From Scyliorhinus canicula (taxonomy: Eukaryota): a stretch of DNA of 64,000 nt. The DNA lies in NCBI RefSeq assembly GCF_902713615.1, contig NW_024056010.1:434001-498000 (forward strand), written 5' to 3'. This document shows positions 1-59,879 of this stretch, in pieces. The position numbers were made by a program, and so were the translations under genes. The notes beneath the pieces are model-generated. The model did not search any database, was not told the origin of the DNA, and worked only from the letters and a program-made list of their open reading frames with translations. How positions within the stretch are numbered: the first letter of the stretch is position 1; each line of letters opens with the position of its first letter.

Positions 1-10
1 AAAGGTTTCA

Positions 11-170
11 AACATCAGTGTGACTGGCAAAGCACCGAGACCCACACAACACACACTCGAGTCAGAGTGTTCCAGTGAACTGACTGTGAAAACATCAGTG
101 TGACTGGAAAAGCAGCGAGACCCACACAACACACACCCGAGTGAGAGAGTTCCAGTTAACTGACTGTGGA
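11..170 (+). repeat. 80-bp tandem duplication inside the degenerate ZNF leader
   Basis: aacatcagtgtgactgg...ttccagt(g/t)aactgactgtg begins at 11 and again at 91. Confidence 0.85.
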
Positions 171-297
171 AAGATCTTTAATCAGTTGCACAGCCTGAAG
201 AAACATCACAACATTCACTGCAGGGAGAGTCTGTACCCGTATTCTGTGTGTGATAAGGGCATCAATGAACCTGGAGAGACACAAGGTGACCCGCACT

Positions 298-807
298 ATG
301 GGGAAACCGTGGAAATGTGGGGACTGTGGGAAGGGATTCAAAGCTCCGTCTGTGCTGGACATTCATCAACGCAGTCACACTGGAGAGAGGCCGTTCACCT
401 GCTCTGACTGTGGGAAAGGGTTCAGTGATTCATCCAACCTGCTGATGCACCAGCGAGTTCACAGCGGGGTGAGGCCATACACCTGCTGTGATTGTGGGAA
501 GGGGTTCAGTCGATCATCCAACCTTCAGTCACACCAGCGAGTTCACACTGGTGAGAGGCCATTCACCTGCTCTGAATGTGGGAATGCGTTCACACTGTTA
601 TCCCATTTGCAGACACACCAAAGAGTTCACACTGGGGAGAAGCCTTTCGCCTGCTCCCAGTGTGACAAAGGATTTACTAATTTATCCAATCTACAGAAAC
701 ACCAGCGGGTTCACACGGGGGAGAGGCCATTCACCTGCTCTCAGTGTGGGAAGGGATTCACACAGTCAGCCAACCTGAAGACACATCAACGAGTTCACAA
801 GCAATAA
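298..807 (+). CDS. C2H2 zinc-finger protein ZF-1 (6 fingers)
   Basis: ORF 250..807; ATG at 298 in context actATGG begins [10 protein letters not shown]; six C-X2-C...H-X3-H fingers with TGERPF/TGEKPF linkers. Confidence 0.85.
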
Positions 808-939
808 CAGGGGTTGGATTCTGCTGTTATTGCTGCTGTTAATCACATCCAGGATTGATATGCTCACAATTGGTGATGTGGGAGGGTTTCTTTCGGCTGG
901 ACTGGCCGGTCTCCCAACTTTGCTTCCAGTTGGTTGATG

Positions 940-1401
940 TGTTAATTCCTGGCTAATTTGCTGTCAGTCTAGATTCAATAAAATCTGAGATGGATTTGCA
1001 GGTATCATATCATTTAATAATAACTAACTTGCAAGGCTGCATCAATCCATAGAGCTACAGGGCACACATACTGTCTTCTGCAACATCCAGGAGTAAGAGA
1101 GATCGTATACAGAGAAGCTTATGCTGATATATTCAAACTCACAATACAATTCACATATAAGCTTCCCATTGGTCATTCTATACACCTCCTGACCTGGTCC
1201 TATATCCTAATTGGTCACTTTGCATTGTAACCCCAGCATCCTTTTCACCATGCGGCTACCCTCCCCCGAGGGTCTCAAACAGGCTTTTGCTAAATCCCTT
1301 TGTCCTTTGTCTGTGAGCTCACTACCATCGGACCGGCCCTATTTATCTATACTATTTTAACTAATAATCCTATTTTTATCATTCATTTATTCATTTCTTC
1401 A
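940..1401 (-). mobile_element. Solo LTR in the 3' region of ZF-1
   Basis: TG...CA termini; 4-bp TSD GATG at 936-939 and 1402-1405; interrupts sequence that is contiguous (ggctgatgctc) in the paralogous ZF-2 3' region; CCAAT and ATTAAA motifs read on the minus strand. Confidence 0.7.
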
Positions 1402-2982: not shown

Positions 2983-3212
2983 AGGCTAGCAGGATGGTGC
3001 AGTGGTAGCACTGCAGTCTCACGGCACTGAGGTCCCAGGTTTGATCCGGACTCTGGGTCACTGTCCATGTGCAGTTTGCATATTCTCCCATATTTGCGTG
3101 GGTTTCGTCCCCACAACCTAAAGATGTGCAGGGTAGGTGGATTGAACACGCTAATATTGCCTCTTTAATTGGAAAAATGAATTGGGTACACTAAATTTTT
3201 TTTTTTTTAAAT
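2983..3212 (+). mobile_element. HE1-type tRNA-derived SINE, A/T-tail subfamily
   Basis: A box tggtgcagtgg, B box ggtttgatcc, body gtcactgtccatgtgcagtttgca, tail aattgggtacactaaattttt; TSD cttaaggtctc at 2972-2982 and 3213-3223. Confidence 0.85.
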
Positions 3213-4539
3213 CTTAAGGTCTCGTCTTCTTTTCACCCCGATTGGCTTTAACTAATTTATAATTCACTCAATTCGGCCAAATTGTCTGTCTATCAATTTT
3301 AAGAGATATATGTATTTAAATATATTGGTGCCAATTTCTCATTCCATCGCCTGCCAATTTTCTAACTTATCCACACGTGCATCGAGACATTATTGGGGAA
3401 ATACAGTTTTCGCTAAGAAATTATCAGCCCTAGACTGGATGTTACTACAGAGACGGAACTACCAGTTCTTAACTGTATAACAATGGGGCCTTTCATCTAG
3501 TTGATGTCATTGTTCTTAGAATCGTAAGCAAGTCTCAAGCAACTTGCAAAATGTAAAACCTGAGAAAGAAATTTGAGCGTGTTATCTGGATTAACCCTTA
3601 ATGGGTTCCCAGCTATTTGTTGCACTAAAGTAATGCCTACTGTGAGTATAGTTAATTTATTCTTAATGAGTTCTCATTTAAACTTTTTATATCTGACAAG
3701 AAAAGTCAATTTCTATAACTCCTTTACTCATTGTGAACAACCCCAGCCTGACATCCACAGTAAAGAAAACAAAGAATATGTTAATGTCTGAAATCAATTG
3801 GGAATGTTTAATTTCTGTTTTAAAGATATTCTGAATATGTTGTCCTGGACAATAAATGAATTGGAATACTTTCCCTTGGGTGTGTCTCAATGGAATATAT
3901 CAATCTGGTATCCACCTACGTTCTCGTGAAAGTCTGGAATGTGTAAATGGGATGAATAAGTTGATCACTTTCTCTTGGAAATATTTACATCCTTGCCCAT
4001 GAACTTTGTTTTAAAGAAGTTCAGCCACTACATAAAATATCAGCACCGTAACATGGGGAGATAAGAAAGACAGACTCACTTTGGTCTTTTCATCAGCACA
4101 TCTGAGAGTTAAGAATGTGTGACATGATTTGGGGATACTGCTGTGAGTGCGCAGATGTGATTTGTTACATGTGAAAAACAGCAAGTGTAAATTCACAGTG
4201 AAATGGGCTGAAGAGTGGGACCCAAACACACACAGCTACTTGAGACATAGCAGGAGATAAAATGGTTAATGTGACCAAGGGATTGAGACAACATTGTGAC
4301 AGCACCAAGGCATTGACACACACTCCAGAGAGAAACTGACTTTAAAACAATCAATGGCGATGGTGCTTCTACCCAGAGTGTAATGGTAATGCTGCTGCAC
4401 TTAGATACTACTGCTCAGACATTAGAGTGTGTCTGCTCTTATTTATACTGAATAAAATCTAACCACTGCCACCAATAAGGGCTATAACTGTGAATCATTT
4501 CAGAGTTTGGGAAAGTGGGGGTGTTAAGGGTCAATACAA

Positions 4540-5720
4540 ATCAGGAGTTGGCCATTCGGCCCCTCGAGTCTGCTCCACCATTCAATAAAATCAGAGCTAA
4601 TCTGATTGTGGTCTCAACTCCTTTCCTTCCTCCACCCTTTCACTCTCTTGTCAATCAAGAATCTATCAAATTCAGCCTTAAAGCAGACTCAAAGGCCCTG
4701 CCTCCACCACTCTCTGGGGAAGAAAGATTCATAGACCCACAGTCATCGGGGCAAAATTATCATCAGCATCTTCAATGGGAGACCCCTTATTTGTAAATGT
4801 TGTCCCCTAGTTCTGGTCTCTGCCACAAGGGGAGGCATTCTCTCTGTCAATTCCAGTCAGCGTCTCATGTGTTTAAATAGGATCATCTTTCATTCTTCTA
4901 AACTGCAATGGATACAGGCCCAACCTGTCAAACCTTTCCTCAGAGGATAACCCCCTCATTCCAGGAATCCGGGGAGTTAACCTCTCTACTGCATCTAAAG
5001 CACTTATCTCATTACTGAAATAAGGAGACGCAAACGGTACACAGTGCTCTAAATATGGTCCCACGAAGGCCCTGTACAACTGCAGCAAAACATCCTTACT
5101 TTTTGTTTCCATTTCCTTTGCAATTAACAACAATGCCATTGACCTTCCTGATCACTTGCTGTACCTGCAGACTAACTGTATCAGGGCACACTGATCCCTC
5201 TGTAACTCCAAGTTCTGCAATCTCTCCATTTAAATAATATTGTTTATTTAATACTTCCTGACAAAATGGACAATTCACATTTTCCAAAGTTATGCTCCAG
5301 CTGACAGGTTTTTGCCACTCACTTAACCTATTTGTAATCCTTTGCAGATTCCTGAAATCCACTTCACAAATTACTTTCCTACCTGCCTTTGAGGCATCAG
5401 AAAATGTAGCCGCCAGACATTCAATCCCGTCATCCAACACATTCATACAGATTGTAAATGGTTGGGAGCCCAGCACGGAACCTGGTGACATTCCACTTGT
5501 CACATCTTACCCACCCAGAAATAACCCATTCATACCTACTGGCTGCTTCCTGTTCGCTAACCAATCCTCTATCCATGCTGATATGTTGATCCCACACCAT
5601 GAGTTCTTATTTTGTGTATTAACCTTTGATGTGACACCTTCGGAAATGATAAAAGCACATCTACAGGTTCCCCTTTATTGACATCCCTTGTCACTTCCTC
5701 AGAGAACCTTGCTAAATTAG
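4540..5720 (-). mobile_element. CR1 LINE 3' portion (RT C-terminal half)
   Basis: ORFs GSVLGSQPFTICMNVLDDGIEC...FSDASK and LLQLYRAFVGPYLEHCV...RLGLYPLQFRRM are typical CR1 ORF2. Confidence 0.85.
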
Positions 5721-5724
5721 TGAA

Positions 5725-5906
5725 TAAAATGAAATGAAAATCACATTGTCACAAGTAGACTTGAAATGAAGTTGCTGTGAAAAACCCCTAGTTGCCACAT
5801 GCCGGCACCTTTTCGGGGAGGCTGGTACGGGAATTGAACTGTGCTGCTGGCTTGCCTTGGTCTGCTTTCAAAGCCAGAAATTTAGCCCTGTGCTAAACCA
5901 GCCCCT
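5725..5906 (-). mobile_element. Second tRNA-like SINE family (tail ggaatgtggcgactaggggcttttcacagtaacttc...(cattt)n)
   Basis: Minus strand reads ggggctggtttagcacagggct...cagttcaattcccgtaccagcc...tail. Tail copies also at ~21915-22040(-), 23480-23575(+), 35605-35690(+), 49835-49930(+), 57490-57650(-). Confidence 0.7.
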
Positions 5907-6652
5907 AATGTTCTAGTCATGTTCAGAATGTTCTAGTCAATCACGGTTGATTCCCTGAACCCATTTTCAAACACTGTCAAAAGAAAAATCAAATTTCCTT
6001 TACCCCTCTGGTTCCTTTGCCAATGACCTTAGACGGACTCACTTTCTGTTAAAGAGCCTGTCAAACTCTCACCCACTTGCCCGAAAGTGAACAAATTTAA
6101 TCAGGAAAAGTCAACAAATTCAAATATTTTCCTGTGAAAAGTTTATTGATCAAACAGAACATGGTTTAAAAAAAATAACAGAAAATTACTTGAGGATCAA
6201 AGACAACCAGAGTAACAGGATGTTCACAATATTCTGGTCCCAAACAGTTTCCCTTCAGCTCCTTTGTACCCTGTTCCCGTGACTCCCCGCTTTGGACACG
6301 GGGCACTGAACCATCAGGCCCTGTCACCCCTCCCCACTGAACCCTGATTGGTAGGAGGTCCAGTTCCCAGTCGGCCTCTAGCACCTTCCTGTCTCTATTT
6401 GCGACGCACATGGCAGTTCCCCAACTGAGGAATAGGCCCCGTTATTGTCAGCTAAATTCAGCCCTCTGCGCCGTCACCAGGCTGTCATTGACATGAGCAA
6501 TAGAGACAGAAAGGTGCCTGAGGGTCAAATAGGAAGACAAAACTTGTGGATTTAGACTCCCATAAAGGTCAGCAACGTTTGAGAAAAAAAATCAAATTCC
6601 CAGTCAACAAATGAAAGGATGACACGACGGGACTTCAAGTTTTATGACTTTT

Positions 6653-7875
6653 GCACTGATAACGGCACCGTTGCCGCTTCCGTCGACGCAGTGTAGCACG
6701 GGCCCGGTGGTGACGGCGACATTGAGGATCTGGGGGCAGTGGAGATGGCACAGAGGGGAGGCAGGGACTTCAATCTGGGCCCCGATACAGAATAATCACT
6801 GGTTCGTTCCGGGTAGAATAGACGGGGCGTTCCTATGTTGGCACAGGGTGGGTATCAAAAGGATGGGGGACGTGTTCATTGATGGGACTTTTGCTCGTCT
6901 GAAGGAGAAATTTGGGCTACCCCCGGGGAATACCTTTAGGTACATGCAGGTTCGTGAAAAAGGTGGGGGAATTCCCACTGCTGCCTGCCCGGAAGATACA
7001 GGACAGCGTGGTCTCAGGGGTGTGGGTAGGGGATGGCAAGATATTGGAAATATATCAGGAGCTGCAGAAGGCGGAGGAGGCCTCGGTGGAGGAGCTGAAG
7101 GGCAAGTGGGAGGAGGAGCTGGGTGAGGAGCTGGATGAGGGCCTGTGGGCTGACACCCTGGGCAGGGTCAATTCCTCCTCACCTTGCTCCAGGCTCAGCC
7201 TGATATAGTTTAAGGTGGTGCACCGGGCACATATGACAGTGGCGAGAATCAGTATGTTCTTCGGGGTGGAGGATAGGTGTGTGAGGTGCTCAGAGAGCCT
7301 GACAAATCATGTCCATATGTTCTGGGCATGCCCGGCACTTACAGGGTTTTGGAAAGGCTTCGCAAAGGCTCTGTCCAAGGTCCTGAACACTCGGGTAAAA
7401 CCGAGCTGGTGGATAGCGATATTTGTGGTATCGGACGATCCGGGAGTGCAGGAGTCGAAAGAGGCCGGAGTTCTGGCCTTTGCCTCCTTAGTGGCCCGGA
7501 GAAGGCTCTTGTTAATGTGGAGGACGCGAAGCCCCCAAGCGTAGAGGCTTGGGTCAGTGACATGGCGAGATTTCTCAGGTTAGAGAGGATAAAGTTTGCC
7601 TTGCGTGGGTGCTTACAGGGGTTCTCCAGGCGGTGGCAACCGTTCCTTGACTTTCTCGCGGAACATTAGGTGGAGGTCAGCAGCAGCAGCAAACCGGCGG
7701 GGGGGGGGGGGCTTAGGCAGTGGATGGATTTCATTTGTAAAGGGCAGATTCCCCACCTTATTTTGTTAAATTAAGTTGTTTTCTGTTTTACTGCTACGTT
7801 TTCTTTTCGTTGTTTTCTTTTTGTAGTACTTTGTAAAAATTATTGAAAACTTTTGAATACAAACAAATTTTTAAA
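6653..7875 (+). mobile_element. 5'-truncated L1/Tx1-clade LINE
   Basis: ORF2 C-terminal Cys-rich region (CVRC...HVHMFWACP, WQPFL), T-rich 3'UTR, A tail; 16-bp TSD aagttttatgactttt at 6637-6652 and 7876-7891. Confidence 0.9.
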
Positions 7876-8079
7876 AAGTTTTATGACTTTTAATACAACA
7901 AAAATAAACTAGAAGCTACTTTAACTCGGAAACCTACACGTTAAACTATAAACGAGAACTGTGCCCTTGCACAATCTGAAATCACACTCCAACATTATGG
8001 TTACACTGTCCTGGAAGTCGAAACTTAATTGTGTCAGAACCTGTCCGAAGTGATGATTCATTCCCGAGGATTTACTTCC

Positions 8080-8720
8080 GTTCTTCAACCAAGACACCGA
8101 GGTAAAAAAAGGGAGAATAGAATGTGAACTAGCAAAATACATAAAAATGGACTGTAAAAGTTTCTGTGGCTACGTAAAAAGGAAACGTTTGGCTCAGACA
8201 AAGGTTTGTCCGTTCCAGATAGAGTCAGGAGAATTTAGAATGAGGAAGAGATCTCTACAGCCACCTCGTTCAGCACTCTGGGATGTAGATCATCAGCTTT
8301 TGGGTATTTATTCACTTTCAACCCCATTAATTTATCCAGTGCTACTTTTTCACCAATACTAATCTCTGCCAGTCCTTTGGTTCTCTGGTATTTTGGGGAC
8401 AATTTCTGTATCTTCCTCTGTGAAGACAGACACACATTGTTTAGTTTCTCTGCATTTCCTTACTCCCCATTATAAACTCTCCTGTCTCTGCCTGGAATGG
8501 ACCCACATTGGTCTTTGCTAATCTTTTCCTTTTCACATTCCTGTAGAAGCTTTTCCAGTTGGTTTTTATGTTTCTCCCCAGTTTGCTCGCATCAGTTTCT
8601 TGATCCTCCTTTGCTGAATTCTAATGGATCTCATGGAATCTTTAACTTTTCTTGTTAGCCACGGTTACATCACTTTTCCTGTTGGATTTTTGTTCCTTAA
8701 AGGAATCTATATTTGTTGTA
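8080..8720. mobile_element. CR1 LINE fragments in both orientations
   Basis: MDCKSFCGYVKRKRLAQTKVCP (+) and KLMGLKVNKYPKADDLHPRVLNEVAVEI (-) are CR1 ORF2 motifs. Confidence 0.75.
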
Positions 8721-9413
8721 TAAGTGTGAAATAAAAGTTGCAAAAATCCCAGCGGACCATAGGCTGCTCTCCCCTTTGACAGAGAGAGAGCTGACTGGAG
8801 CTGATTTAAGCTGAGGGTCAGCACACCTCAGGCGACGGGCCAGGTTGAGAAGGCGGGGCCTTCATGAATAAACTCAGCCAGTACGGGAGTTGAATCCTCA
8901 CTGTTGGCCCCGAACCAACCGTCCAGCCAACTGAGCTGACCGACCCCTGATAAATATGTAATAATTCCTTAACCATTAGGTAGTCCCTGTACCAATCAGT
9001 TTCCCAATCCACCTCAGACATCTTGCCCCTCATACCCGGATAGTTTTCTTCTGTGAGGTACATCCAGATAACTTAAACAAATGAACCATGTAAACACCAG
9101 GGCCCATCTCCATGGCAACGTGGCATGCTTTGGAGTGTTTGAAACAGAAATGGAAACTAAATATCTCCACACTTCCAAACCCCCTTTCACTCTGTGATCC
9201 TTGTACAATTTGAAGCCAGGTATTAGCAAAAAGGCTTAAAGAGCATCAGCCGACTGGAGGCAAAGTGGTGAGATCGGCCAGTCCAGCAGAAAGAAACCCT
9301 CCGACCATCCCCACTGACCACCTGTCAGAATGAACAAAATGCAGTCCTGGGTGTAGAGCAGAAACAATAACAGCAGAATCCAACCCCTGTAATCTATTGT
9401 GAAATTGTTGGTG

Positions 9414-10148
9414 TCACAGCAGGTGCGATGAAACATGCAATCCCGTCTCCGAGTGAGAGGTGGACGGCGTCTCCCCAGTGTGAACGCGCTGGTGTCTCCG
9501 CAGGTTGGATAATTGAGTAAATCCTTTACCACACTGAGAGCAAGTGAATGGCTTCTTCCCAGTGTGAACTCGCTGGTGTGTCCGTAGGGTGGATAAATGT
9601 GCAAATCCTTTCCCACACTGAGAGCAGGAAAATGGCCATTCCCCAGTGTGAACTCGCTGGTGTGTCTGCAGGTGAGATAATTGATTGAATCCCTTCCCAC
9701 ACTGAGAGCAGGTGAATGGCCTCTCCCCAGTATGAATTCGCTGGTGTCTCCGCAGGGTGGATGAATCAATGAATCGCTCCCCACACTGAGAGCAGGTGAA
9801 TGGCCTCTCCCCAGTGTGAACTCGCTGGTGTCTCCGCAAGGTGGATAAATGCGCAAATCCTTTCCCACACTGAGAGCAGGTGAAGGGCCTCTCACCAGTG
9901 TGAACTTGCTGGTGTGACTGCAGGTTGGATACTTGAGGAAATCCTTTCCCACACTGAGAGCAGGTGAATGGCCTCGCCCCAGTGTGAAGTCGCTGGTGTG
10001 TCTGCAGGGTGGATAATTGAATGAACCCCTTCCCACACTTTGAGCAGGTGAATGGCCTCTCCCCAGTGTGACTGCGTCGATGAATCTCCAGCTGAGATGG
10101 GGCTCTGAATCCCTTCCCACAGTCCCCACATTTCCACGGTTTCTCCAT
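9414..10148 (-). CDS. C2H2 zinc-finger protein ZF-2 (8 intact fingers plus degenerate last finger)
   Basis: ORF 9414..10184; ATG at 10148 (aacATGG) begins [10 protein letters not shown]; ends at a TGA inside a decayed ninth finger. Confidence 0.85.
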
Positions 10149-11569
10149 GTTTTGGGTCTCCTCGTGTCTCTCCAGGTTGGACAATCAGTGGAAGCCTCGT
10201 CCACAACACGGGTACGGACCCTCCCCGCTCTGAATGTTGTTATGTTTTTCAGGCTGTGTAACTGGTTAAAGCTCTTTCCACAGTCAGTTCAGTGGAACAC
10301 TCTCACTCGGATGTGTGCTGTGTGGGTCTCGGTGCTTTTCCAGTCACACTGATGGTTGAAATATTTAGCTGACAGTTCGGGTAAACATTTCTCCTTCTAG
10401 ATTCAAAGCCCGATGATATTCAGATTCCAAGGAAAGAAATGACTGTCAGATCGAGACATGACGTTTGAGATTTCTGTCTGTAATTCCCCCTTGTCTCACA
10501 TCCTGCAACAAAAATTTACAAAATTCATCACTGTCAGTACAGGATAGAAATGCAGAACAGTCAATTCTAGTTTCTGTGTCACATTTTTTCCTCCCTCTTA
10601 TTCCGCGAAAGCTGTAAATCCCCATCCCACACACTCTCCCTCCATTCTCACTCTGCTGTATCTAATATTCACCCTCCCAATTCTCCTGAAGCTGCTGATT
10701 CAGGCTGATTGACAGATCCATGCTCACAGCTTCCTGTCCAGGTGATCATAACAAATATGAGCTGCATTCGGCCCATCGAACCTTAACCATTCAATGGGAT
10801 CATTGGCCGATCGACCTCAGCACCATTTTCCCACACTATCCCTATGTCCCTTGACCTCTTGAATATCTAGAAACCGATTAATCTATGTCTTGAAAATACT
10901 TAATGACTGAATCTCCAGAATCCTTTGGGGTAGAGAATTCCAAACCTTCACCACATCCTCGAATAAAGAAATCCCTCCTCATCTCAGCTTTCTCTCCATT
11001 TAACTGCCAGTTCCCCATAACACTCGACACCCTCAATCTGATATCTATCGGTGGTGGGGGGGGGGGGGGGGGGGGGGGTGGTCAGCCATGTGATACGGGT
11101 GCGGGAGTAGCTGCTTTTCCACAGGTTCTGGCACCACTCACCTATAATTTGATACTTATCCTAATTGCCTGGCACTCATCTTCCTAATCCTTGAATTCAT
11201 ATTTATTATCGTGTCCCTGGAAGACTTCAGGGTTCGGATGGTAGGATTATGCCGGAAAAATTGAAGAACTGCGTTGATAAACAGCGTTGGTGGATTCAGC
11301 GTGGGTGGAGACGCATTTTCAACATGGAGGCCTGGCCCTCAGGAGGTCTCTCGACCCCCCGCTCTCCGGGGCTCTCTGGGAGGTGGCGAAAACGATGTCT
11401 GCCGACATTATCCGTGTTACTGACCAGAGGCTGAGTGTGCTGACTCAATATCTGTGAGCTCATGAAGCACAGCTGCAAAACCCCATCAAGAGGCCTGGGA
11501 TGAAAACTATCCCTCGGACTCAAAGACCGATGCACCCTTTCTAATTTGAAACGCCCAGGCTTCATAGCC

Positions 11570-11719
11570 TCCAGTGTGAATTCGCTGGTGTCTCCGCAGG
11601 GTGGATGAATCAATGAATCGCTCCCAACACTGAGAGCAGGTGAATGGCCTCTCCCCAGTGTGAACTCGCTGGTGTCTCCGCAAGGTGGATAAATGTGCAA
11701 ATCCTTTCCCACACTGAGA
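11570..11719 (-). pseudogene. 150-bp near-identical copy of two ZF-2 finger segments inserted in the L1
   Basis: Matches ~9726-9875 with only a few substitutions ([31 protein letters not shown](W/G)[18 protein letters not shown]). Confidence 0.9.
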
Positions 11720-11870
11720 TCCGGAGAAGAGAATCCTGAACATTCAGCAAGATGCCTCCTCAACAGAGGCAAGAATTCAATCCTTTGAAAACCAGCCCAG
11801 TGGTGTGGTGGAGGTCCTGGAGGACCGAGGGCAGAGAAAGAACATCCGAGTCATCGGCCTGTCAGATGGT

Positions 11871-12200
11871 CATCATAGAATTTACAGTGCAGAAGAAGGC
11901 CATTCGGCCCATCGAGTCTGCACCTTAGAAAGAGTACCGAACCCAAGCCCTTACCACCACCCCATCCCCCTAACCCCACCTAAACTTTTATTTGGACACT
12001 CAGGGCAATTTAGCATCGCCAATCCACCTAACCTGCACATCTTTGGACTGTGGGAGGAAACCGGAGCACCCGGAGGAAACCCACGCACACATGGGGAGAA
12101 CGTGCAGACGCAGCACAGAAAGTGACCCAAGCTGAGAATCGAACCTGGGACCCTGGAGCTGTGAAGCAACTGTGCTAACCACTGCGCTACCGCGCTCCCC
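11871..12200 (-). mobile_element. HE1-type SINE with CR1-derived tail
   Basis: Minus strand: gggagcgcggtagcgcagtggttagc...ggttcgattc...ggccttcttctgcactgtaaattctatgatg. Confidence 0.9.
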
Positions 12201-17760: not shown

Positions 17761-18516
17761 AGCCTGGGACCAGAGGGCATAATCTCAGAGTAAGGGATCA
17801 CAAATTTAGGACAGAGATGAGGAGACATTTCTTCCATCAGAGGTTAGAGAATCTGTGGAATTCTTTAGCAGGGCAATCCTTCTTTATCTGGGAATCAAAC
17901 TGTTGTCTAATTGTCCCGGCAGTTACCAGGCTCCCGTGAAGTCCTCCAGCTGTTATTTTAATGCAGACTTCAACAATCTATCTTCAGTAGGTTTCTATTA
18001 ATTCATTGTGACTGTCACATGACCACATTTTCAGTCTGGAAACTTAAATAAGCTGCTTTACATTCAATCAGGAATATCACAGTTTTACACCAACCTCTGA
18101 TTTGACAGCAAATTTCCAGCATTCACCATTGTTCTTCCTGACTCTAAACACAGTCATAAAGGAGCTTCTGTTCCCTGTTGAGGAGCTCTGAACCATGGAA
18201 GAGAACAGCTGGGATATATTCCACTCACACCTCAGGATTAACCCACACGGGGACTTTGCTGTCAGTGAAGAGAGATGAGAAAGACCCAAGTGTCATTTGT
18301 CCCTCTCAGTGTGACCCTAAAGGACTGTGTCCAGGCTGAAGTTCTGTGTGATCCTCCCCCAGATTGTCCTTTCTGAGCTCCAGACAGGTGATGTTAACCA
18401 CTCAGGTGGGAAAGACAAAAATCTGCAACAACATTTCAAACCAAGCTTATTTATTTCAAATTTATTCAGAATTTTAAACCTCATCAACAGATTAACACTG
18501 TCACAGTGAAACTGAT

Positions 18517-19665
18517 TCACTCCTGAACATGATTAACAGCATCAATAAAGGAAGAATCCAAAATTTGTAGTCGCTTGTGAACTCGCTGGTGTGTTAGCAA
18601 GTGGGATGACTGAGTAAATCCCTTTCCACAGACGTTACAGGTGAATGGCCTCTCCCCAGTGTGAATGCGATGATGTTTCAGAAGATAAGATGAATGAAAA
18701 AATTCCTTCCCACATCTGGAGCAGGTGAACGGCCTCTCCCCACTGTGAACTCTCTGGTGTGTCAGCAGGTTGGATGACTGACTGAATCCCTTCCCACACA
18801 CAGAACAGCTGAACGGCCTCTCTCCAGTGTGAACTCGTTGGGGATTCAATAGGTTGGATGAACGAGTGAATCCCTTCCCACACACTGTGCAAGTGAACGG
18901 CCTCTCCTCACTGTGAACCTGCTGATGTGTCAGAAGGTTGTATGAACGTGTGAATCCCTTCCCACAGTCAGAACAGGTGAACGGTCTATCCCCTGTATGA
19001 AGTTGCTGGTGTATCAGAAGGTTGGATGAATTAATGAATCCTTTCCCACAGTCAGAGCAGGTCAATGGCCTCTCCCCGGTGTGAATTCTCTGGTGGTTCA
19101 GTAGGGCAGATGGACGGCTGAAACCTTTCCCGCAAACAGAGCAGGTGAATGGCCTCTCCCCAGTGTGAGCATATTGGTGTGTTAGTAAATCCTTTTTGTT
19201 TTTAAAGCTCTTCTCACAGTCAGGACAGTTAAAAGATTTGTTATCAGAATGAACAAGTTGATGTGTCTGCAGGTGGGATGACTGAATGAATCCTTTCCCA
19301 CACAGGGAGCAGGAGAACGGTCTCTCTCCAGTGTGAATACGTTGATGTGTCAGCAGATCCTTTTTACATTTAAAACTCTTCTCACAGACAGGACATATAA
19401 ACGGTCTCTTACCAGTGTGAACAAGCTGATGAGTCACAATGTGGAATGACCGAGTGAATCCCTTCCCACAAACAGGGCAGGTGAATGGCCTCTCCTCAGT
19501 GTGAACTCGCCGGTGTGTCAGAAGGTTGTATGAATGGGTGAATCCCTTCCCACAAATGGAGCAAATGAACGGTCTCTCCCCAGTGTGACTGCGACGATGA
19601 ACTTCCAGTTGTGATGGGTAACTGAATCCCTTCCCACAGTCCGCACATTTCCACGGTTTCTCCAT
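18517..19665 (-). CDS. C2H2 zinc-finger protein ZF-3 (13 fingers, one with H>P) with translated C-terminal tail
   Basis: ORF 18517..19713; accATGG at 19665; ends ...HQRVHKRLQILDSSFIDAVNHVQE*. Confidence 0.9.
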   Translation of the reverse strand: MEKPWKCADCGKGFSYPSQLEVHRRSHTGERPFICSICGKGFTHSYNLLTHRRVHTEERPFTCPVCGKGFTRSFHIVTHQLVHTGKRPFICPVCEKSFKCKKDLLTHQRIHTGERPFSCSLCGKGFIQSSHLQTHQLVHSDNKSFNCPDCEKSFKNKKDLLTHQYAHTGERPFTCSVCGKGFSRPSALLNHQRIHTGERPLTCSDCGKGFINSSNLLIHQQLHTGDRPFTCSDCGKGFTRSYNLLTHQQVHSEERPFTCTVCGKGFTRSSNLLNPQRVHTGERPFSCSVCGKGFSQSSNLLTHQRVHSGERPFTCSRCGKEFFHSSYLLKHHRIHTGERPFTCNVCGKGFTQSSHLLTHQRVHKRLQILDSSFIDAVNHVQE

Positions 19666-20309
19666 GGTGAGGGTGTTGTTATGTCTCTCCCGTTTAAAGC
19701 CTTGTCGACACACGCAAAAGGAGTATAGTTTCTCCCTGCTGTGAATGGTGTGGTTTTCTTTTAGGCTGTGTAACTAGTTCAAGCTCTTTCCAGTCAGTGC
19801 AATGAAACACTCTCATTCGGGTGTGTGTGTGTCTCGGTGCTTTTCCAGTCACACTGATCTTTCAAATTTTTTTCCTCAAATGGAAGAGACAAACATTTCT
19901 CCTTACAGTTTCAAAGACTGATTCAGCTCCTGATGAATCGAGTGGCTGTCAGATCTCAATGTGATGTTTGGTTTTGAGTTTTCTGTCGGCCAATCCTCCA
20001 CTTCCAATATCCTGTGAAAGTAATTTACAAAAACCATCACTGTCAGTCCAGGATAGAAATTCTGAACAGACAATTCTAGTTTCTCTGGAACATTTTTTGC
20101 TCTCTTGTTCCCCTAAAGCTGTAAATCCCCGTCCCACACACTCTCCCTCCTCCCTGGGCTGAAATCCAAACCCATCTCACCATGCTGCCCTTCTTTCCTC
20201 CACTCCCAGTTTTCTCCCTCCCTCTCCTCTGCCTGGGATCAGTTCTCCAGCTACTGTCTGCAGACTGACAATAAAACCAATGGGTCTTATTGGGGGGTTT
20301 GGGTTCTCA

Positions 20310-25351: not shown

Positions 25352-26221
25352 ATGGAAGGAAAAAGCATCGTTCACAGTGGGGAGAAACCGTACACGTGTT
25401 GTGTGTGTGAACGAGGATTCAGTCAATCATCAGGCCTCACAAGCCACAAATGCAGTCACACTGAGGAGAAACCGTGGAAATGTGTGGACTGTGGGAAAGG
25501 ATTCACTTACCCATCCAGCCTGGAAACTCATCGACGCAGTCACACTGGGGAGAGGCCATTCACCTGCTCCACGTGTGGGAAGGGATTCACTGAGTCATCC
25601 ACACTGCGGCAACACCAGCGAATTCACACTGGGGAGAGGCCATTCACCTGCTCCAAGTGTGGGAAGGGATTCACTCTGTCATCCACTCTGTCCACACACC
25701 AGCGAGTTCACACTGGGGAGAGATCATTCACCTGCTCAGAGTGTGGGAAGGGGTTCATTCAGTCTGTCCACCTGCGGAAACACCAGCGAGTTCACACTGG
25801 GGAGAGACCATTTACCTGCTCCGAGTGTGGGAAGGGATTCGCTGACTCATGTGACCTGCGGAAACACCAGCGAGTTCACACTGATGAGAGACCATTCCAT
25901 TGTCCAGACTGTGGGAAGAGCTATAAAAGTTCTGTGGACCTGATGCGCCATCAACGTGTTCACACTGATGAGAGACCATTCAGGTGCTCTCACTGCGGGA
26001 CTGGGTTCAGACAATCATCTAACCTCACTGTACATCAGCGAATTCACACTGGGGAGAAACCATTCACCTGCTCCCAGTGTGGGAAGAGATTCACTCAGTT
26101 ATCCGACCTGGAGAAACACCAACGAGTTCACACTGGGGAGAGACCGTTCACCTGCTCCCAGTGTGGGAACGGATTTGCCACTTCATCCAACCTGCTGAGA
26201 CACCAACGAGGCCACAAGTAA
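25352..26221 (+). CDS. C2H2 zinc-finger protein ZF-4 (10 fingers; MEGKS subfamily)
   Basis: ORF 25187..26221; aacATGG at 25352; probable acceptor tttcacag|gg near 25243. Confidence 0.9.
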
Positions 26222-26409
26222 CCACAGACATTGGGTTTTGCTGTTCCTCACGTTCAGGACTGAACCATGTTCATTTGGGTCTCTTTCTGCTGATAACAAA
26301 CTCCAGCCCATTTACAGGGCTAATAGTCTGGCTAAAAGTCAAATAAATTAGATCTGTGTTAAATGAGCAGTGTGTTGAAACTTTTTAATATCTCTGACAC
26401 AAGTTAGTT

Positions 26410-30490: not shown

Positions 30491-33179
30491 GAGACAGTTT
30501 CCTACTAATCTTCAGATTGAACAATGAGCCTTCTTAAGAATTATTCATTCATGGGAGGTGGGAGTCACTGGCTGGACCAGCATTTACTGCTCATTCCAAT
30601 TGCCTTTGAACTGCGTATCTTGTGAGGCTATTTCAGAGGACACTTACAAATCAACCACAACATTGTTGTGGATCTGGAGTCACGTATAGGCCAGGACACA
30701 TAAGGAGAGCATAGTCCAAAAGGACATTAATGAACCAGATGGGTTTTTACAACAATCAACAGTCATAATTCGACTTTTAATTTGAGATTTTACTCAATTT
30801 CACCATGTGTCACAGGCAGATTCAATCCCAGATCCCCAGAGCTTTAACCTGGGTCTCTGGATTACTAGCCCAGTAACAATACCATTACTCCACTGCCCAG
30901 CCCACATAGTCTTGGCAGAATATGATGTTTGTAACTTCTCACAATTATAAAAGTAATTCATTTTTCAAACAAATTCTGATAGCTCTGCAGTTTCTGGAAA
31001 CATTTTGGTTGATCGTGTTATTTTTAAAAATAAAGATCTAGTCTTTGCAATATAATTACCTAATACACCAATTCACTAATGATAATTAATGTTAACTACT
31101 GAATAATCATGAATTTAATTCTTGTTTTTTGCTATGAAATCAATACATAGTTCATATAGAAAAGGTACAGAAGGTGAAATGGCTGCAGGAAGCCACATGT
31201 TAGAGATATAAAAGGGCTTCCTTGACCTTATTATTAATGACAGTGACTGCACTACGAAAATAACAATTTAAAAACTAAATGTGATTACACATGCGTACTT
31301 ACAGCGTCCTACATTACAACAGTGAATATGATTCAAAAGTACTCCATTGGCTTAAAACACTTCAGGTGGTCCAGTGGTAGTGAGAGGTTTTATAAAAATG
31401 TACATTTGTACTAATTGTCCACAAACGAGGATATATTACACTTGATGTCCTCACCAAAATCATTGATAAAGATTGAGTCTTAATTTTGTGTAATAACAAC
31501 GGCATTGGCACCATTTTGAATACTCTGTGAAACTCCCGACACACCATACGCAGAATTATTTGTTGTAAAACACAGCGAGTTGTTGTGATTTGGAATGCAC
31601 TGTCCATAAATGGTGCTAGAATCTCATTGGACTGTAACTTCCTAAAGGGAATTTGGTACATTCTGAAAAAGAAAACAAAATAGTCGAACTATGGAATTAA
31701 ATGGGTCGCTGTACAAAGAGCTGGCACGAGAAAAATGGGCCAATTAGACTTCTCAGTGCTCGAGGAGCCTTGTGTACATGTAAAGCGAGTGGTAATGACC
31801 TGGAACCTACTGCCTATGAGGGTGGGAGATGCAGAGATGACAGAAGGATTGCAATAGGAAATTGGACAGGCACTGAGAGAAATAAACACACAGGGATTAG
31901 GGGATAGAACGGGGCAATGGACAGACTGGCTTCCTCCACAGGGAGCCGACATGGTACCAAAGGGCTGAATGGCCCCATTCCCCACCCTCCAGATGCTGTG
32001 ATCGCAGGAGAGAAATTCAGCTGCTCCAGTCACTCCAACTAACTGGAGTCCCTCATCCCTGGTACCATTCTCATTAATGTCCTCTACACCCCAAGAACAT
32101 CACATCTTTCCGAAAGTGGGGAGCCCATATATAGGGTTCCATTGCAGAGGGATAGAATTGAAAAACATGGAGGAAATGTTCAGCTTGTTTAGAACGATGG
32201 TTAGACAACACTGGGAGCTGTATCAACATTGGTGATCTCCATTTTGATAAAGGAAATAGAGGCACTGGATAAGGCGCAACAAAGATTCATAATATACAGA
32301 ACTGAGAGCATTTAACACTCAGGAAAGGCTGGGGCTGCTTTTTTCTGGTAAAGCAAAGGCTGATGGGTGACCTGGTGGAAGTCTTTGAGATTATGAAGGG
32401 ATTCAATAATCCAATAGGAATTTCAGTGGAAACCTCTTTCCCCAGCGAGTGGTGAGAACGTGGAACTCGTTACCACAGCGAGTGGTTGAGATGAACAGCA
32501 TGAACCCATTGAACGTAAAGCCAGATACATACATGAGGGAGAAAGGAATAGAGGAGATGCTGATGGGGGGAGATGTTAGGTGGTGGGTGGAGGATCATGT
32601 GGAGCATAAATACTGACAAAGTCCATGACTAATCTCAGCCGGTATGGGAATTTAACCTGTGCTGTTGGTGTCACTCAGCACAAACCAGCCAACTGAGCTA
32701 ACCAATCCCTGTGTAAATCTGTAATAATTCCTTCAATATTAGTGATTGCCTGTCTCCCACCATACTATTTAATGTAGTTTCCCAGTGCACCTCAGACAAC
32801 ATGCCCCTCATACCCTGATTGTTTTCTTCTGTGAGAAGCACGAAGATAATTAAAACAAAATAATTATGTAACCACCATAGCCCATCTTCATGGCAATGAG
32901 GCATGATTTTTGGGGTTTCCAAACAGAAATGGTAATGAAACATCTTCTAACCGCAAAACCCCTTTCACTCCTTGTGAAATGCAAAACCAGATATTCGCAA
33001 GAAGGCTCAGAGAGAATCAACCCACTGGAGACGAAGCCGTCTGACCGGCCAGTCCAGCAGAAAGAAACCCTCTGACCATCCCCATTGACCAACAGAATGA
33101 ACAAAATGCAGTCCTGGATGTAATTGAGAACAGAAACAATAACAGCAGAATCCAATCCCTGTAATCTATTGTGAACTAT

Positions 33180-33440
33180 CTCAGGCTTGGTCACTGTCTG
33201 TGTGGAGTCTGCACGTCCTCCCTGTGTGTGCGTGGGTTTCCTCCGGGTGCTCCGGTTTCCTCCCACAGTCCAAAGATGTGCGGGTTAGGTGGATTGGCTA
33301 TTCTAAATTGCCCGTAGTGTAAGGTTAATGGGGGGATTGTTGGGATACGGGTTACGTGGGTTTAAGTAGGGTGATCATTGCTCGGCACAACATCGAGGGC
33401 CGAAGGGCCTGTTCTGTGCTGTACTGTTCTATGTTCTATG
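33180..33440 (+). mobile_element. 5'-truncated HE1-type SINE in the terminal finger of ZF-5
   Basis: HE1 body plus CR1 tail gggccgaagggcctgttctgtgctgtactgttctatgttctatg. Confidence 0.85.
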
Positions 33441-33565
33441 TAACATGTTGGTGTCTCAGAAAGTGCAATAAATTACTAAATCCCATCGCACATTGAGAGC
33501 AGGTGAACGGCCTCGTCCCAGTATGAACTACCTGGTGTGACTGCAGACGGCATAACCAAGTGAAT
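33441..33565 (-). pseudogene. Detached, decayed 3' fingers of ZF-5
   Basis: gagagcaggtgaacggcctcgtcccagtatgaac finger/linker sequence between the SINE and the CR1; the 3' block continues at 33050-33177. Confidence 0.8.
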
Positions 33566-34917
33566 TGTGTAAATAGATGTAAACGGGAGTGAGATCATCG
33601 GGATTATGGATACATGGCTGCAGGATGACCAGGGATGGGAATTGAATATATTCAGTATTTAGGAAGGACAGACAAAAGGAAAAGGCAGTGGAGCGGCAGT
33701 GCTGGTTAAAGAGGAAATTATTGTAATAGTGAGGAAGCATATTAGCTCCGACAATGTGGAATCTGTATGGGTAGAGCTGAGACACACCAAGGGGCAAAAA
33801 CATTAGTGGGCATCTTATATAGATCCCCAAACTGCAGTGGTGATGTTGGGAATGTCATAAAACAGGAAATCAGGCTGATTGTATCAGAGGCGACAAAGAA
33901 ATGGGTGAGAAAATAAATACATAATTTGCTTCTTTCTTCACAAAGCTACCAGAAATGTTGGGAAAAGCAGGATTTAGTGAGAGGGAGGAACTGAAGAAGC
34001 TCAATATTAGGAGAGAAATGGTGGTGAAATTGATGGGATTGAAGGCTGGTAAATCCCCAGGGCCTGATAATCTGCAACCAAAGTACTTAGGGAAGTCGTG
34101 TAGAAATAGTGGATGCAACGGTGGTCATCCTCCAGGATTCTATAGACTCTGGAACAGTTCCTGCAGATTGGCTTATGTAATTCCACCATTTAAAAAGACA
34201 GAGAGAAAACAGGGAATTATAGACCAGCAAGTCAGACATCGGCAGTGGGGAAAATTCTAGAATCCATTCTCATAGATTTTATAGCAAAGCACTGAGAAAC
34301 CAGTGACAGGATCGGACAGAGTCAGCATGGATTTATGAAGGGAAAATCATGCTTGACAAATCTACTGGAATTCTTCGTGGGTATAACTGGTAGAGTTAAC
34401 GAGGGGCAGCCAGTGGATGTGATATTTGGACTTTCAGATGGCTTTTGACCAAAGTCCCGCACAAGAGATTATTGTGTAAAATTAAAGCACTTGGGATTAG
34501 GGGTAGTGAATTGATATGGATAAAAAACTGGTTGGCGGGCAGGAAACAGAGTAGGAATTAATGGTCTTTTTCAAACTTGCAGGCAGTGACTAGTGGGATA
34601 CCACAGGGATCGGTGCTAGGACCTGAGATATTCACAAGATATATTTATGATTTAAGAAAAATTTAAAGTACCCAATTCCTTTTTACCAATTGAGGGGCAA
34701 TTGAGCGTGGCCAATTCACCTACCCAGCACTTCTTTGAGTTATGGGGGTGAGACCCACGGAGACACTGTATCCACACGGATAGTGACCCAGGGCAGGATT
34801 AAACACTGGTCCACAGTGAGGCAACAGTGCTAACCACTGCAACACCCTATATATTAATGATTTGGTGAGGGAGGAAAATCCAATATCTCCAAATTTGCAG
34901 ATGACACCACTTTGCGT

Positions 34918-34948
<31 letters not shown>

Positions 34949-35822: not shown

Positions 35823-35984
35823 AATCCCTTCCCACACTAAGAGCAGGTGAATGGCTTCTCCCCAGTGTGAACTCGCTGGTGCGTCTGCAGACTGGATAAC
35901 TGTGTGAATCCATTCCCACAGAGGGAGCAGGTGAATGGCTTCTCCCTAGTGTGAACTCGCTGATGTCTCTGCAGGATGGATGAA

Positions 35985-41924: not shown

Positions 41925-43259
<1,335 letters not shown>

Positions 43260-43529
43260 TTATAGGGATTGGATTCTGTTACTGCTGCTGTTAATCACAT
43301 CCAGAACTGAACCGTGTTCATTCTGACAGTTGTCAGAGTTTGTTTCAGTTGATGTTAATCATTCCTGTGACTCGGCCGGAGTTTAATATTCTGTAGATTA
43401 ATTAAATTAGCTCTATGTTGACGACAGTGTTCCAGTCCTTGATTTCTCTAAGATAAGAGGAGACTGATTGATGTCCTGTTACCGACTTTTCCATTGTTGG
43501 ATCTTTTCGGATTTGTTTTGGAAGATGTG

Positions 43530-48616: not shown

Positions 48617-49452
48617 CGTCACAAGTGACTCAGGGATTGGATTCTGCTGTTATTGCAGCTGCTACTGACAACCAGGCCCGAATAACATTTGTTCTAACAG
48701 ATGGGGTTTGTTTCTGCTAATGTTAATCCACTGTTTAACTGAGCTGGAATTAATTATTCTGGATCTATAGCTGATTGTGTTCTCGGGGCTGCAGAATTCT
48801 GGAAACGCTGTCTGATCTTTCCCCATAATTCAGAAACTCTCATTGGAAATTAGTTCACAACAATGTTCTGGACTTTTCCTTCAATCACAAAATGACCTTT
48901 GGTACAATGATTTGTTCCACTGATTAACATTTCCGATTAGAAAGTGCTGATCAGCCCTTGCTGCCAATTCTCAGTGATTTGTACATTACACACAGTGAAG
49001 CCTCCGTTATCGCCCAGAAAGGGAATGGGAATTGGTGGAGAATTGAGAGTTCAGAATGTTATCCTTCCCATCTCCCATCTTGTCCAGAAATCCCCTCAGA
49101 CCGGGAATGGAGACAAGTTCAATCCAAGTAATAGATTGTAAGAAATCACAGTTTAATCGACTTATGTAAAATCATCAGAAATTTATGGCATATTCCAGAA
49201 ATAGCTCTCCCTCTGTATTCTGCAGAAAGCTTCTCTGTCAACTTGCTGACTGACAAACACAGGACAGACCTGTTATCTCAGCCAAGGACAATGTCTTGAG
49301 CATAGCCCCTGAAAGAAGACATTTTTAACACTTATACAATTGGACATTATGAGCCAGTCGTTACCCAACTGTGTGCAACAATTAACAATGGCTCTCAAGA
49401 ACAAGGAGATTTCAAAGTGATTGGCTTCATCCAAACATCGAAATCTGGCTCA

Positions 49453-54070: not shown

Positions 54071-54624
54071 ACTAAATCCAAATCATGGCCAAGTGCAATC
54101 GGAGTTATCCAGCAGTTCAGCACTAATGGGGAGAGATATTTCACAAAACAAGTAACATCCAGTAATTCACTGTAAATCAGCACTGATGGATGCTGAGTGT
54201 TCATTACAGCAGGATCAGAGTCTGAGGTTAGAAATTGGTGAGTTTACTTTCAGAGTAATTCCATCAATATCTGACAAGTTAACAGCTTTGAACAGCTCCT
54301 TTATCAAATAGCTCGAACCTGATGATTACAAACATTCAGAGCTTACACAGCCTTATCCTCGAGTTTCAGAACAGACTTTCCCCTGTCAATATACTGCTGC
54401 AGGATTGGATTGAGATTTGTTTATTGTTCATGTTCAGTTCAATGCAAATTTAAAACAAGGTTTGCAGAGATGATGTTCTATTCACGCATGAATGAGACAT
54501 GCTGTGGGGCACACATCAAGTCCAATAAGGCTGCTTTACATCAGAAATAAATTCCTAACTATCAGAATAAACAGTCCTGGATGTGATTAACAGCAGCAAT
54601 AACAGCAGAATCACACCCCTGTAA

Positions 54625-55750
54625 TCACTGGCGAACTCGCTGGTGTCTCAGCAGGTTGTATGACTGGGTAAATCCCTTCCGGCACGTGGAACAAGTGAAT
54701 GGCTTCTCTTCGCTGTGAACCTGCTGGTGCCTCAGCAGAGTGGATGACCGGGTGAATCCTTTCCCACACTCAGTGCAGGTGAATGGTCTCTCTCCAGTAT
54801 GGAATCGCTGGTGTACAGTGAGGTCGCTTGATCTCCTGAACCCAGTCCCGCATTAAGAACACGTGAACGGTCTCTCATCAGTGAACACGTTGATGGTGCC
54901 GCAATTCCTCAGAACTTTTATAGCACTTCCTGCAGTCTGGGCATTTAAACAGTCTCTCCTCACTGTGAACACGTTGGTGTTTCTGCAGGTTGGATGATCG
55001 ATTAAATCCCTTCCCACATTCACAGCACATGAACGGCCTGTCTCCAGTGTGAATGTGCTCATGTGCCACAAGGTGGAAAGATGTCCTGAACCCCTTTCGG
55101 CAGTGAGAGCAGCTGAACGGTGTGGAACCGGTGTGACTGTACTGATGCTCCCTCAGTGTGCGTGGACTTTTAAAACTCTTTCCACAATCAGTTTAATCAA
55201 TTAAACTCTTTCTTGTCTGTGTGAACTCGCTGGTGTTTCTGCAGAGCAGAGAAATCAGTGCTTCCCTTCCCACACACCGAGCAGGTGAATGGCCTCTCCC
55301 CTGTGAATGCGCCGACGAGTAAATCCCTTTCCACATTTGGAGCAGGTGAACTGCCTCTCCCTGCTGTGAATGCACTGGTGTATCAACAGGCCAGCCAACT
55401 GTGTGAATCCCTTCCCACACACTGAGCAGGTGAAAGGTCTCTCTCCAGTGTGTGTGTCGGTGACATTCCAGGCCAACTCGATAATTGAATCCTCTCCCAC
55501 AGTCTCCACATTTATACAGTCTTTCCCCATTATGACTGCACTTGTGTCTCATCAGGCCAGATGAACGCTTGAAACTGTGTCCACACACAGAACACATATG
55601 CAGTTTTACCCCACTGTGAACGGCACTTTTTCCTTCCATGTTCAAAAGCTGATGATATTCAGATCCTGAAGAATCGAGTGATTGTGTCAGATCTTGACCT
55701 GGTCTTTGATTTACGATTGTCTGTAATTTCTCATCTTCTAATACCCTGAA
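54625..55750 (-). pseudogene. ZF-8: frameshifted ZNF pseudogene (MEGKS subfamily)
   Basis: Leader QDLTQSLDSSGSEYHQLLNMEGKSAVHSG is open; finger array is broken across several frames (ORFs 55193-55897, 55255-55530, 54878-55069). Confidence 0.85.
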
Positions 55751-59435: not shown

Positions 59436-59879
59436 CACAGCAACAGGTTGATAAGTGTCTGCAGGGTTTGGATTCTGCTGTTATTGCTGCTGTTAATCAC
59501 ATCCAGGACTGAACCATGTTCATTCTGACTGTTGGAGTTTGTTTTTGCTGATGTTAATAATCCCAATAACTGGGCTGGAGTTTATTCCTCTGGATCAATG
59601 TCAAATGAACTAATATTGTTTCAGACACACAATCGAGACCCTCATTTCGCCAGGATAAGAGGAGATGAATTGATGTCCTGTTACTGACTGCTGCATTTTT
59701 ATGGCCTTTCCTCCTTTCTAACTCCAGACTATTTCAGTTCTCACACCGTCAGTTACTCTCACAGCCATGTCCCAGCTCCCCATCGCTTCCAGTGTGTCTG
59801 TCTTAGCTTTGTCATCCAGGGGAGGTATTGGTAACAAACTCAGGATCACTAAACACAAACCCAGTCATTTGTACTGATG

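Follow-up and report, generated by a model that had tools for sequence, protein, structure and literature searches.

The block behind the last finger of catshark C2H2 zinc-finger genes is probably the start of an old, family-wide 3' untranslated region

A stretch of 64,000 nucleotides (nt) from the catshark Scyliorhinus canicula (NCBI RefSeq assembly GCF_902713615.1, contig NW_024056010.1, positions 434,001 to 498,000 of the forward strand), referred to below as the window and numbered from its first letter, was analysed with regard to a short sequence block that lies behind the last finger of its zinc-finger genes. Nine C2H2 zinc-finger arrays (ZF-1 to ZF-9) are carried on both strands of this 64-kb window, interspersed with fragments of long interspersed nuclear elements and other repeats. 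When a profile of the post-finger stretch was run over the whole window, exactly nine copies of the block were obtained, every one directly behind a C2H2 array. A first-pass annotation, made from the letters alone, had described the block as a cryptic C-terminal peptide in the finger frame, entered through a single gating codon; the block is real, being present in 9 of 9 copies, and the translations quoted for it were reproduced. The block is probably the start of an old, family-wide 3' untranslated region (3'UTR) behind an ancestral TGA, with a frame that is open by accident, and would then be an ordinary feature of these genes rather than a hidden effector peptide.

The arrays consist of tandem C2H2 fingers with TGEKP-type linkers; ZF-3 and ZF-4 were matched by the Pfam families zf-C2H2 and zf-H2C2_2 with E values down to 1e-84, the decayed ZF-8 more weakly, and no effector domain was recognised by Pfam in the exon seen here of the zinc-finger family of the window. 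The codon that follows the last finger (the gate) reads CAA, AGA, CGA, TAA, AGA, TGA, TGA, TGA and TGT in ZF-1 to ZF-9, respectively. The coordinates of the copies, together with their readings in the finger frame, are as follows.

250-807, plus strand: ZF-1 open reading frame (ORF).
716..801, plus strand: last C2H2 finger of ZF-1 and its terminal Lys codon (799-801), with the family-typical ...HQRVHK end.
802..807, plus strand: ZF-1 gate CAA (802-804), then the actual stop TAA (805-807).
808..858, plus strand: ZF-1 block, including the in-frame TGA 856-858 and the identical core 817-854; first third of the 3'UTR; finger-frame reading HKQ, stop, QGLDSAVIAAVNHIQD, stop.
859..972, plus strand: remaining 3'UTR of ZF-1 to AATAAA (967-972).
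793-902, plus strand: match of the block profile at ZF-1.
9281..9403, minus strand: ZF-2 block and proximal UTR; gate AGA 9392-9390; frame broken and second stop lost by a net deletion of 2 nt; finger-frame reading HNRLQGLDSAVIVS.
18478..18582, minus strand: ZF-3 block copy; gate CGA 18573-18571; 19-codon tail translated to TGA 18519-18517; finger-frame reading open, HKRLQILDSSFIDAVNHVQE, stop; gene intact, with 13 fingers.
26211..26295, plus strand: ZF-4 block copy; gate TAA 26219-26221; 12-nt deletion between two GCTGTT direct repeats; finger-frame reading HK, stop, PQTLGFAVPHVQD, stop (12-nt gap); gene intact.
33052..33176, minus strand: ZF-5 block copy; gate AGA 33167-33165; 3-nt insertion; finger-frame reading given with that of ZF-2.
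43248..43354, plus strand: ZF-6 block copy; gate TGA 43257-43259; in-frame TAG two codons on; 3-nt deletion; finger-frame reading HK, stop, L, stop, GLDSVTAAVNHIQN, stop (3-nt gap).
48619..48722, plus strand: ZF-7 block copy; gate TGA 48626-48628; frame broken by a 1-nt deletion; block not in the finger frame.
54536..54635, minus strand: ZF-8 block copy; gate TGA 54627-54625; perfect 38-nt core; finger-frame reading RQ, stop, LQGCDSAVIAAVNHIQDCLF, stop.
59448..59553, plus strand: ZF-9 block copy; gate TGT 59456-59458; perfect core; block not in the finger frame.

The genes in front of the block are in different states. Between the ZF-5 block and its own finger array (35823-37244), repeat DNA of about 2.6 kb has been inserted (33177-35822), which severs the two. 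The ORF of ZF-7 ends at 48616, where an earlier TGA (48614-48616) replaces the CGA of HQR in the last finger. ZF-8 is a pseudogene, with at least four frameshifts and internal stops in its finger array (54630-55900, minus strand) and without one zinc-binding His in its last finger (HQRVRQ). The block of ZF-9 was put out of the finger frame by a deletion in the last finger, and the 321-residue ORF (58470-59435), which is an annotated single-exon coding sequence in NCBI assembly GCA_902713615.2, ends before the block. At ZF-1 the translation given by the first-pass annotation was correct, and the stop in it is formed not by the gate codon but by the TAA that follows. The 38-nt core was confirmed as identical at 817-854 (plus strand), 54575-54612 (minus strand) and 59471-59508 (plus strand), with 0 matches in shuffles.

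The original state of the gate was estimated from DNA contigs of four differently labelled organisms, which were aligned to 600-1100 at a likeness of at least 80%; organism A is the window's species, E and F are further shark labels, and shares are shares of depth. The block was present in organisms E and F as well, and organism G matched the fingers only. Position 802 reads T at 88% (A), 96% (E) and 86% (F), position 803 reads G at 92%, 92% and 79%, and position 806 reads T at 90%, 88% and 85%, respectively, so that by these majority letters the usual state is AAG TGA TTA CAG. An A at position 803, which covers CAA and TAA together, accounts for only 8% (A), 8% (E) and 21% (F). Neutral CpG decay of CGA should produce TGA and CAA about equally, being the same change on opposite strands. 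Since CAA should then be about as common as TGA and A at 803 is scarce, TGA was inherited and did not arise recurrently. A toggling of the gate by CpG decay of CGA, as had been proposed, is thus not borne out: TGA is the majority state, at roughly 80-95% under the three shark labels, and evidently the original, ancestral stop, and CAA is rare. The summed depth over the block (804-854) was about 3,800-5,800 in organism A, against 14.7 for the contig that matches ZF-1 exactly; summed depth is not a copy number and was taken only as 'many copies'. Forty of the 110 variable places are considered here (855, at which a difference must exist in most copies, is not among these), and that none of them falls in 807-894 is no evidence of invariance there. 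As an observation on its own, the premature TGA of ZF-7 is an instance of CGA-to-TGA decay, which does occur within the fingers of this zinc-finger family.

The block was also found at zinc-finger loci of batoids, with three copies in the skate Amblyraja radiata (L002) and two in the sawfish Pristis pectinata (L003), and in 5 of these 5 copies the finger end reads CAC AAG TGA CT(G/C) and is followed by the block; this arrangement is therefore older than the sharks, and TGA at the gate is old as well as common. The identity of the batoid copies to the catshark consensus was 0.70-0.87 in the last 30 coding nt, 0.64-0.80 in the block and 0.46-0.57 in the next 50 UTR columns. Both sawfish copies carry a -1 nt frameshift within the block, and in neither skate nor sawfish does the second in-frame stop fall where the catshark has it. 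The ending of the block in TGA at a fixed place is accordingly true of most catshark copies, where plain homology accounts for it, and does not extend to the batoids. The block was not found in the Narcine locus nor in a second skate locus. One Logan contig taken up as a relative does not belong to the zinc-finger family studied.

Among proteins, the tail occurs at the end of RefSeq models P0011 and P0013 of the horn shark Heterodontus francisci, with Arg or Ile as the gate residue, and in model P0018 the last finger is frameshifted and the closing tail has decayed, without a readable gate codon. Model P0013 also reads an internal copy of the block as ...NHIQDKTMF, which may be compared with NHIQD, stop, TMF past the block stop in the catshark. 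The three models (named zinc finger protein 850/91-like, 1,420-1,550 residues, spanning 46-51 kb) join finger arrays via transposon-derived stretches (reverse-transcriptase-like or integrase-like) and are probably chimeric predictions. With the ZF-3 tail as the query, a word-index protein search returned nine candidates, none of them with the tail, and with the horn-shark consensus tail (400-residue query) no protein of 220-700 residues in a set of 5.8 billion proteins shared three words. In an exhaustive protein search ranked by summed finger scores, only the three horn-shark models bore the tail, and a whole-protein search was dominated by vertebrate zinc-finger proteins. The tail is translated only in sporadic stop-loss copies, namely ZF-3 and the horn-shark gene models.

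The frame behind the stop was examined by codon position and by the ratio of nonsynonymous to synonymous differences per site (pN/pS), on the small sample of nine window copies and five batoid copies. The differences of the nine block copies from their consensus fall on codon positions 1, 2 and 3 as 18, 18 and 16, whereas in the last two fingers, taken as the control, the counts were 38, 40 and 64. The pN/pS values of the block against the consensus were 0.63, 0.73 and 0.76 for frames 0, +1 and +2, respectively, and none stands out; between the batoids and the catshark consensus the block differences by codon position were 10, 13 and 15. No coding signature is present in the block, and nothing indicates selection on the added residues. 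The frame is broken or carries an extra stop in four of the nine window copies (an extra in-frame stop in ZF-1 and ZF-6, -2 nt in ZF-2 and -1 nt in ZF-7). In ZF-3, the intact gene that translates the tail, the differences are mostly amino-acid-changing, and in stop-loss copies the tail is probably without function. The first-pass annotation had asked about the phase of the indels, and 4 of 7 have a length divisible by three, a share without statistical significance (binomial p=0.17); the in-frame ones, such as the deletion between direct repeats in ZF-4 and the 3-nt deletion within CTGCTG in ZF-6, may be products of slippage, the sequence there having a three-base period (GCT GTT ATT GCT GCT GTT).

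A functional effector or degron peptide, made through low-level UGA read-through or through switching of the gate codon, is very improbable on these data. It would draw on UGA, the leakiest stop, which occupies the gate in nearly all copies and species, on the C at +4 in the batoid context TGA-CTG and in a few shark copies, which makes UGA leakier (PMC5868278), on the in-frame indels, and on a helical hydrophobic moment of the tail peptide that is moderate yet within the top 4-5% of shuffles (top 5% when taken as amphipathic moment). Constraint specific to one frame is lacking both within the catshark and between catshark and batoids, however, and in the sawfish as well as in four of nine window copies the frame is disrupted. 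The prevailing context is TGA-TTA and not UGA_CUAG, contrary to the read-through motif that had been suggested, the tail of the sole intact gene in which it is translated is among the most diverged, the indel excess is not significant in a slippage-prone sequence, and no SECIS or other recoding element was found in Rfam. The effector or degron proposed for the peptide is thus not supported. The same open frame might alternatively be the fossil of a true C-terminal domain of the founder gene, removed by a nonsense mutation that predates the elasmobranch radiation, which is improbable though somewhat less so. The frame is open and has one common end in most catshark copies, the peptide has its amphipathic moment, and an LQ.LDS start is recognisable in skate translations as well; but an open frame as long as that of the block occurs in 40% of block shuffles, frame +1 of the block is likewise open, second stop and frame are not common to the batoids, and proteins with a sense gate were found only as the sporadic horn-shark models.

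Homology among the paralogues does not stop at the block. It runs about 50-110 nt beyond the TGA of the block, towards the poly(A) signal, and signals of the AATAAA type follow the finger end at a distance of about 120-170 nt; from stop to poly(A) the homology is colinear, with a stop codon in front in most copies, as in a homologous family 3'UTR. The stretch 872-939 of ZF-1 is homologous to ZF-2 and ZF-5 and has high depth in organisms A, E and F, and NHIQD, stop, TMFI recurs among the catshark copies. The mean pairwise identity was 0.75 in the core and 0.57 in the next 46 nt, and was random beyond about +140. About 75 nt further downstream there is another motif, TCTGCTGATGTTAATC-like, that the skate retains too, and the third skate copy has preserved this downstream motif better than the block.

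The preferred explanation would account for these data as follows. The block would be the first ~55 nt of the ancestral 3'UTR of a large elasmobranch C2H2 family without an effector domain, the proteins of which would normally end in ...HQRVHK, with the next codon as the original TGA stop. About 150 nt from the stop to the poly(A) signal would have been copied with each duplication and would have decayed slowly; because the UTR was co-duplicated and slow to decay, the paralogues share letters, an accidental open frame and the next in-frame TGA. Where the stop became a sense codon (CGA in ZF-3, AGA in ZF-2 and ZF-5, TGT in ZF-9, and the Arg or Ile codons of the horn-shark models), translation would continue to the next stop and add about 19 residues.

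Several observations weigh against a UTR that simply decays. The helical moment of the peptide and the C at +4 have been given above. In four separate pairs, 156 of 216 block positions are identical (72%), compared with 100 of 164 in the next 50 nt (61%, p=0.03). In ZF-1, ZF-8 and ZF-9 the flanks on either side of the unchanged 38-nt core are 20-30% different, which is unexpected under uniform decay. The block is moreover very old, with 64-80% identity between batoids and catshark, about equal to that of the adjacent coding end, and such an age is long for sequence under no constraint, even though the molecular clock of cartilaginous fishes is slow. On the other side, the youngest pair, ZF-2 and ZF-5, has much the same identity in the block (0.93) as in the UTR that follows (0.94). 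The distance of the block from the consensus is 0.24 in ZF-3 and 0.39 in ZF-4, both intact, as against 0.08 in the pseudogene ZF-8 and 0.02 in the truncated ZF-9, and these distances fit young copies lying near the consensus better than working genes keeping an element. The unchanged core could be due to short conversion tracts, to recombination at the 3' end or to constraint at the nucleotide level. A modest nucleotide-level constraint on the block is possible, though unproven.

That selection keeps the block, or all 150 nt of the UTR, as a cis-acting element of the mRNA (a UGCU/CUG cluster for an RNA-binding protein or a small RNA) is a tentative alternative, the likeliest of those weighed here but well short of an even chance. 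It is compatible with an ancestral stop and differs from the preferred explanation only in claiming constraint; if it were true, hundreds of zinc-finger mRNAs would be under common post-transcriptional control. The higher conservation of the block than of the next 50 nt, the core that is identical in three copies despite diverged flanks, its high summed depth under three shark labels, the block that is still recognisable in skate and sawfish and the downstream motif kept in skate are consistent with it. However, the block surpasses the neighbouring UTR only slightly and in an alignment-sensitive way, divergence between species appears half as large when a family consensus is the reference, the youngest pair differs equally in block and flanks, and the most diverged blocks belong to two intact genes and a perfect one to a pseudogene. 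The miR-15/16 seed match TGCTGCT, which had been put forward with the UTR reading, occurs in ZF-1, 6, 8 and 9, hence in 4 of 9 copies; ZF-2, 3, 4, 5 and 7 have lost it, both sawfish copies and skate copy 1 likewise lack it, and it is thus not kept better than its surroundings. No conserved RNA structure was found with RNAalifold (consensus -2.8 kcal/mol, compensatory change in 0 of 9 pairs), and Rfam gave no match at the gathering score in the window and none at E<=10 in 59400-59650. Of the suggested family-wide 3'UTR element, then, the location at the start of an old family UTR is upheld, the microRNA site is not general, and constraint beyond the rest of the UTR is only weak.

Some features of the 5' ends and arrays were observed alongside. 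ZF-1, 2, 3, 5, 6 and 9 have in common a 5' leader (window 1-200; roughly 95-210 nt ahead of each first finger, for example at 19760-19875 on the minus strand and 58260-58375 on the plus strand), which shows 84-94% identity and is conserved as well as the 3' block. In ZF-4 and ZF-8 the leader differs and the protein starts with MEGKS, which makes two gene classes with one common 3' end. The third codon positions of finger 1 are 80% identical, that is, as conserved as the block.

With regard to these classes, short-tract gene conversion or unequal crossing-over among the clustered paralogues might have re-copied the 3' end and left islands of identity without any function, a doubtful explanation that ranks slightly below the RNA element. 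ZF-8 belongs to another leader class than ZF-1 and ZF-9 despite the core identical to those class-1 copies; with its class-2 leader and decayed first finger (0.28 from the consensus), its block is nevertheless within 8% of the consensus, and the copies lie in one cluster in both orientations. In the same pairs, however, differences of 20-30% are seen both in the last finger and in the UTR beyond the core, so the tracts would have to be very short.

Other identities of the block and its surroundings were tried and rejected. Selenocysteine insertion at the UGA was discarded, as no SECIS element appeared in the Rfam searches above. A microRNA precursor was considered on account of a resemblance of the core, in sense, to mature miR-23, but there was no Rfam match (E<=10) and the fold is weak. 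By eye the UTR could be taken for two decayed fingers; nhmmer with a finger profile gave no match, and although alignment of the consensus to the 84-nt unit gave p=0.03-0.08, a position-weighted profile was no better than shuffles (z=0.0). A splice site at the gate appears unlikely from the letters there, most copies lacking a GT donor at the gate or close to it and TTACAG/G (the slash marking the candidate junction) being without a pyrimidine tract. Retrocopies, as an explanation for homology that ends near the poly(A) signal, are contradicted by ZF-6/ZF-9 and ZF-2/ZF-5, which are homologous well past that signal.

Further observations concern the surroundings of the copies. The ZF-5 insert contains a reverse-transcriptase-like ORF at 35123-35608, and a repeat that translates as GGNRSTRRKPTHTQGGRADSTQ lies directly upstream of the ZF-5 block and again near 61200 and 37900. 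Frame +1 of the finger arrays is open for 150-320 codons at 9236-10204 (minus strand), 25377-25943 (plus strand) and 36140-36592 (minus strand), and in ZF-2 it runs through the block as the leucine-rich WILLLLFLL; it looks like a by-product of the repeat composition. Around and after the AATAAA of ZF-1, at 940-1058, the summed depth is about 3,000-12,000 in organism A, and this sequence occurs in E but not in F; it is probably a high-copy repeat of recent origin that adjoins ZF-1.

Among known systems, efficient vertebrate read-through takes place at UGA_CUAG, with a protein-coding pattern beyond the stop in the best cases (PMC5868278). The genes of that class (AQP4, OPRL1, MAPK10, MDH1, LDHB and VDR) resemble the catshark block in having UGA, an open frame, a fixed second stop and conserved post-stop sequence; the context here is TGA-TTA-CAG (TGA CTG CAG or TGA CTC in batoids) rather than CUAG, none of the frames has a coding pattern, and many copies have a broken frame. 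Ordinary stop-loss variants, which run on to the next in-frame UTR stop, are like ZF-3 and the horn-shark models, with the difference that here the UTR is common to hundreds of paralogues. Independent stop-loss copies therefore gain nearly identical tails, and for this reason the tail looks like a domain. In mammalian ZNF mRNAs, sites for miR-181 and miR-23 lie in the repeated finger-coding region, as shown by reporter assays. The likeness is one short sequence across many paralogous zinc-finger mRNAs, with common control conceivable; those sites are in coding repeats, whereas the catshark sequence is in the 3'UTR and has its only named seed match, that for miR-15/16, in 4 of 9 copies. The KRAB-ZNFs of tetrapods and the FiNZ-ZNFs of cyprinid fishes likewise form large, clustered arrays with fast turnover amid transposons and with many pseudogenes, unlike the catshark family, for which no effector domain was recognised in the exon seen here. 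Sharks, cartilaginous fishes, UTRs and C-terminal tails are not mentioned in the study of zinc-finger expansions among metazoans (Wells et al. 2023, PMC10547256), and neither the tail nor the block was found described in the literature searched.

Taken at their strongest, the peptide and RNA alternatives would mean that the UGA after ...HK has been a deliberately leaky stop since the elasmobranch ancestor, with the amphipathic tail carried, as a degron or effector, by a minor fraction of every zinc-finger protein, or in a milder form that a 300-million-year-old 3'UTR control element serves hundreds or thousands of mRNAs; such an outcome must be regarded as a long shot. The data speak against selection on the peptide, and may be compatible with low-level read-through or with a role at the RNA level.

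For work on such families, the preferred explanation of the block as co-duplicated UTR carries a warning, namely that the shared 3'UTR of a much-copied family mimics a hidden domain, in that frame and second stop recur and indels keep the frame; the tail has already entered a few horn-shark protein models through annotation pipelines. The HK-TGA end and the UTR behind it mark one old, effector-less zinc-finger lineage of sharks, skates and sawfish, and can serve as a DNA tag by which the family is collected and dated. If the modest extra conservation of the block is real, it would point to a common post-transcriptional control of a very large transcription-factor family.

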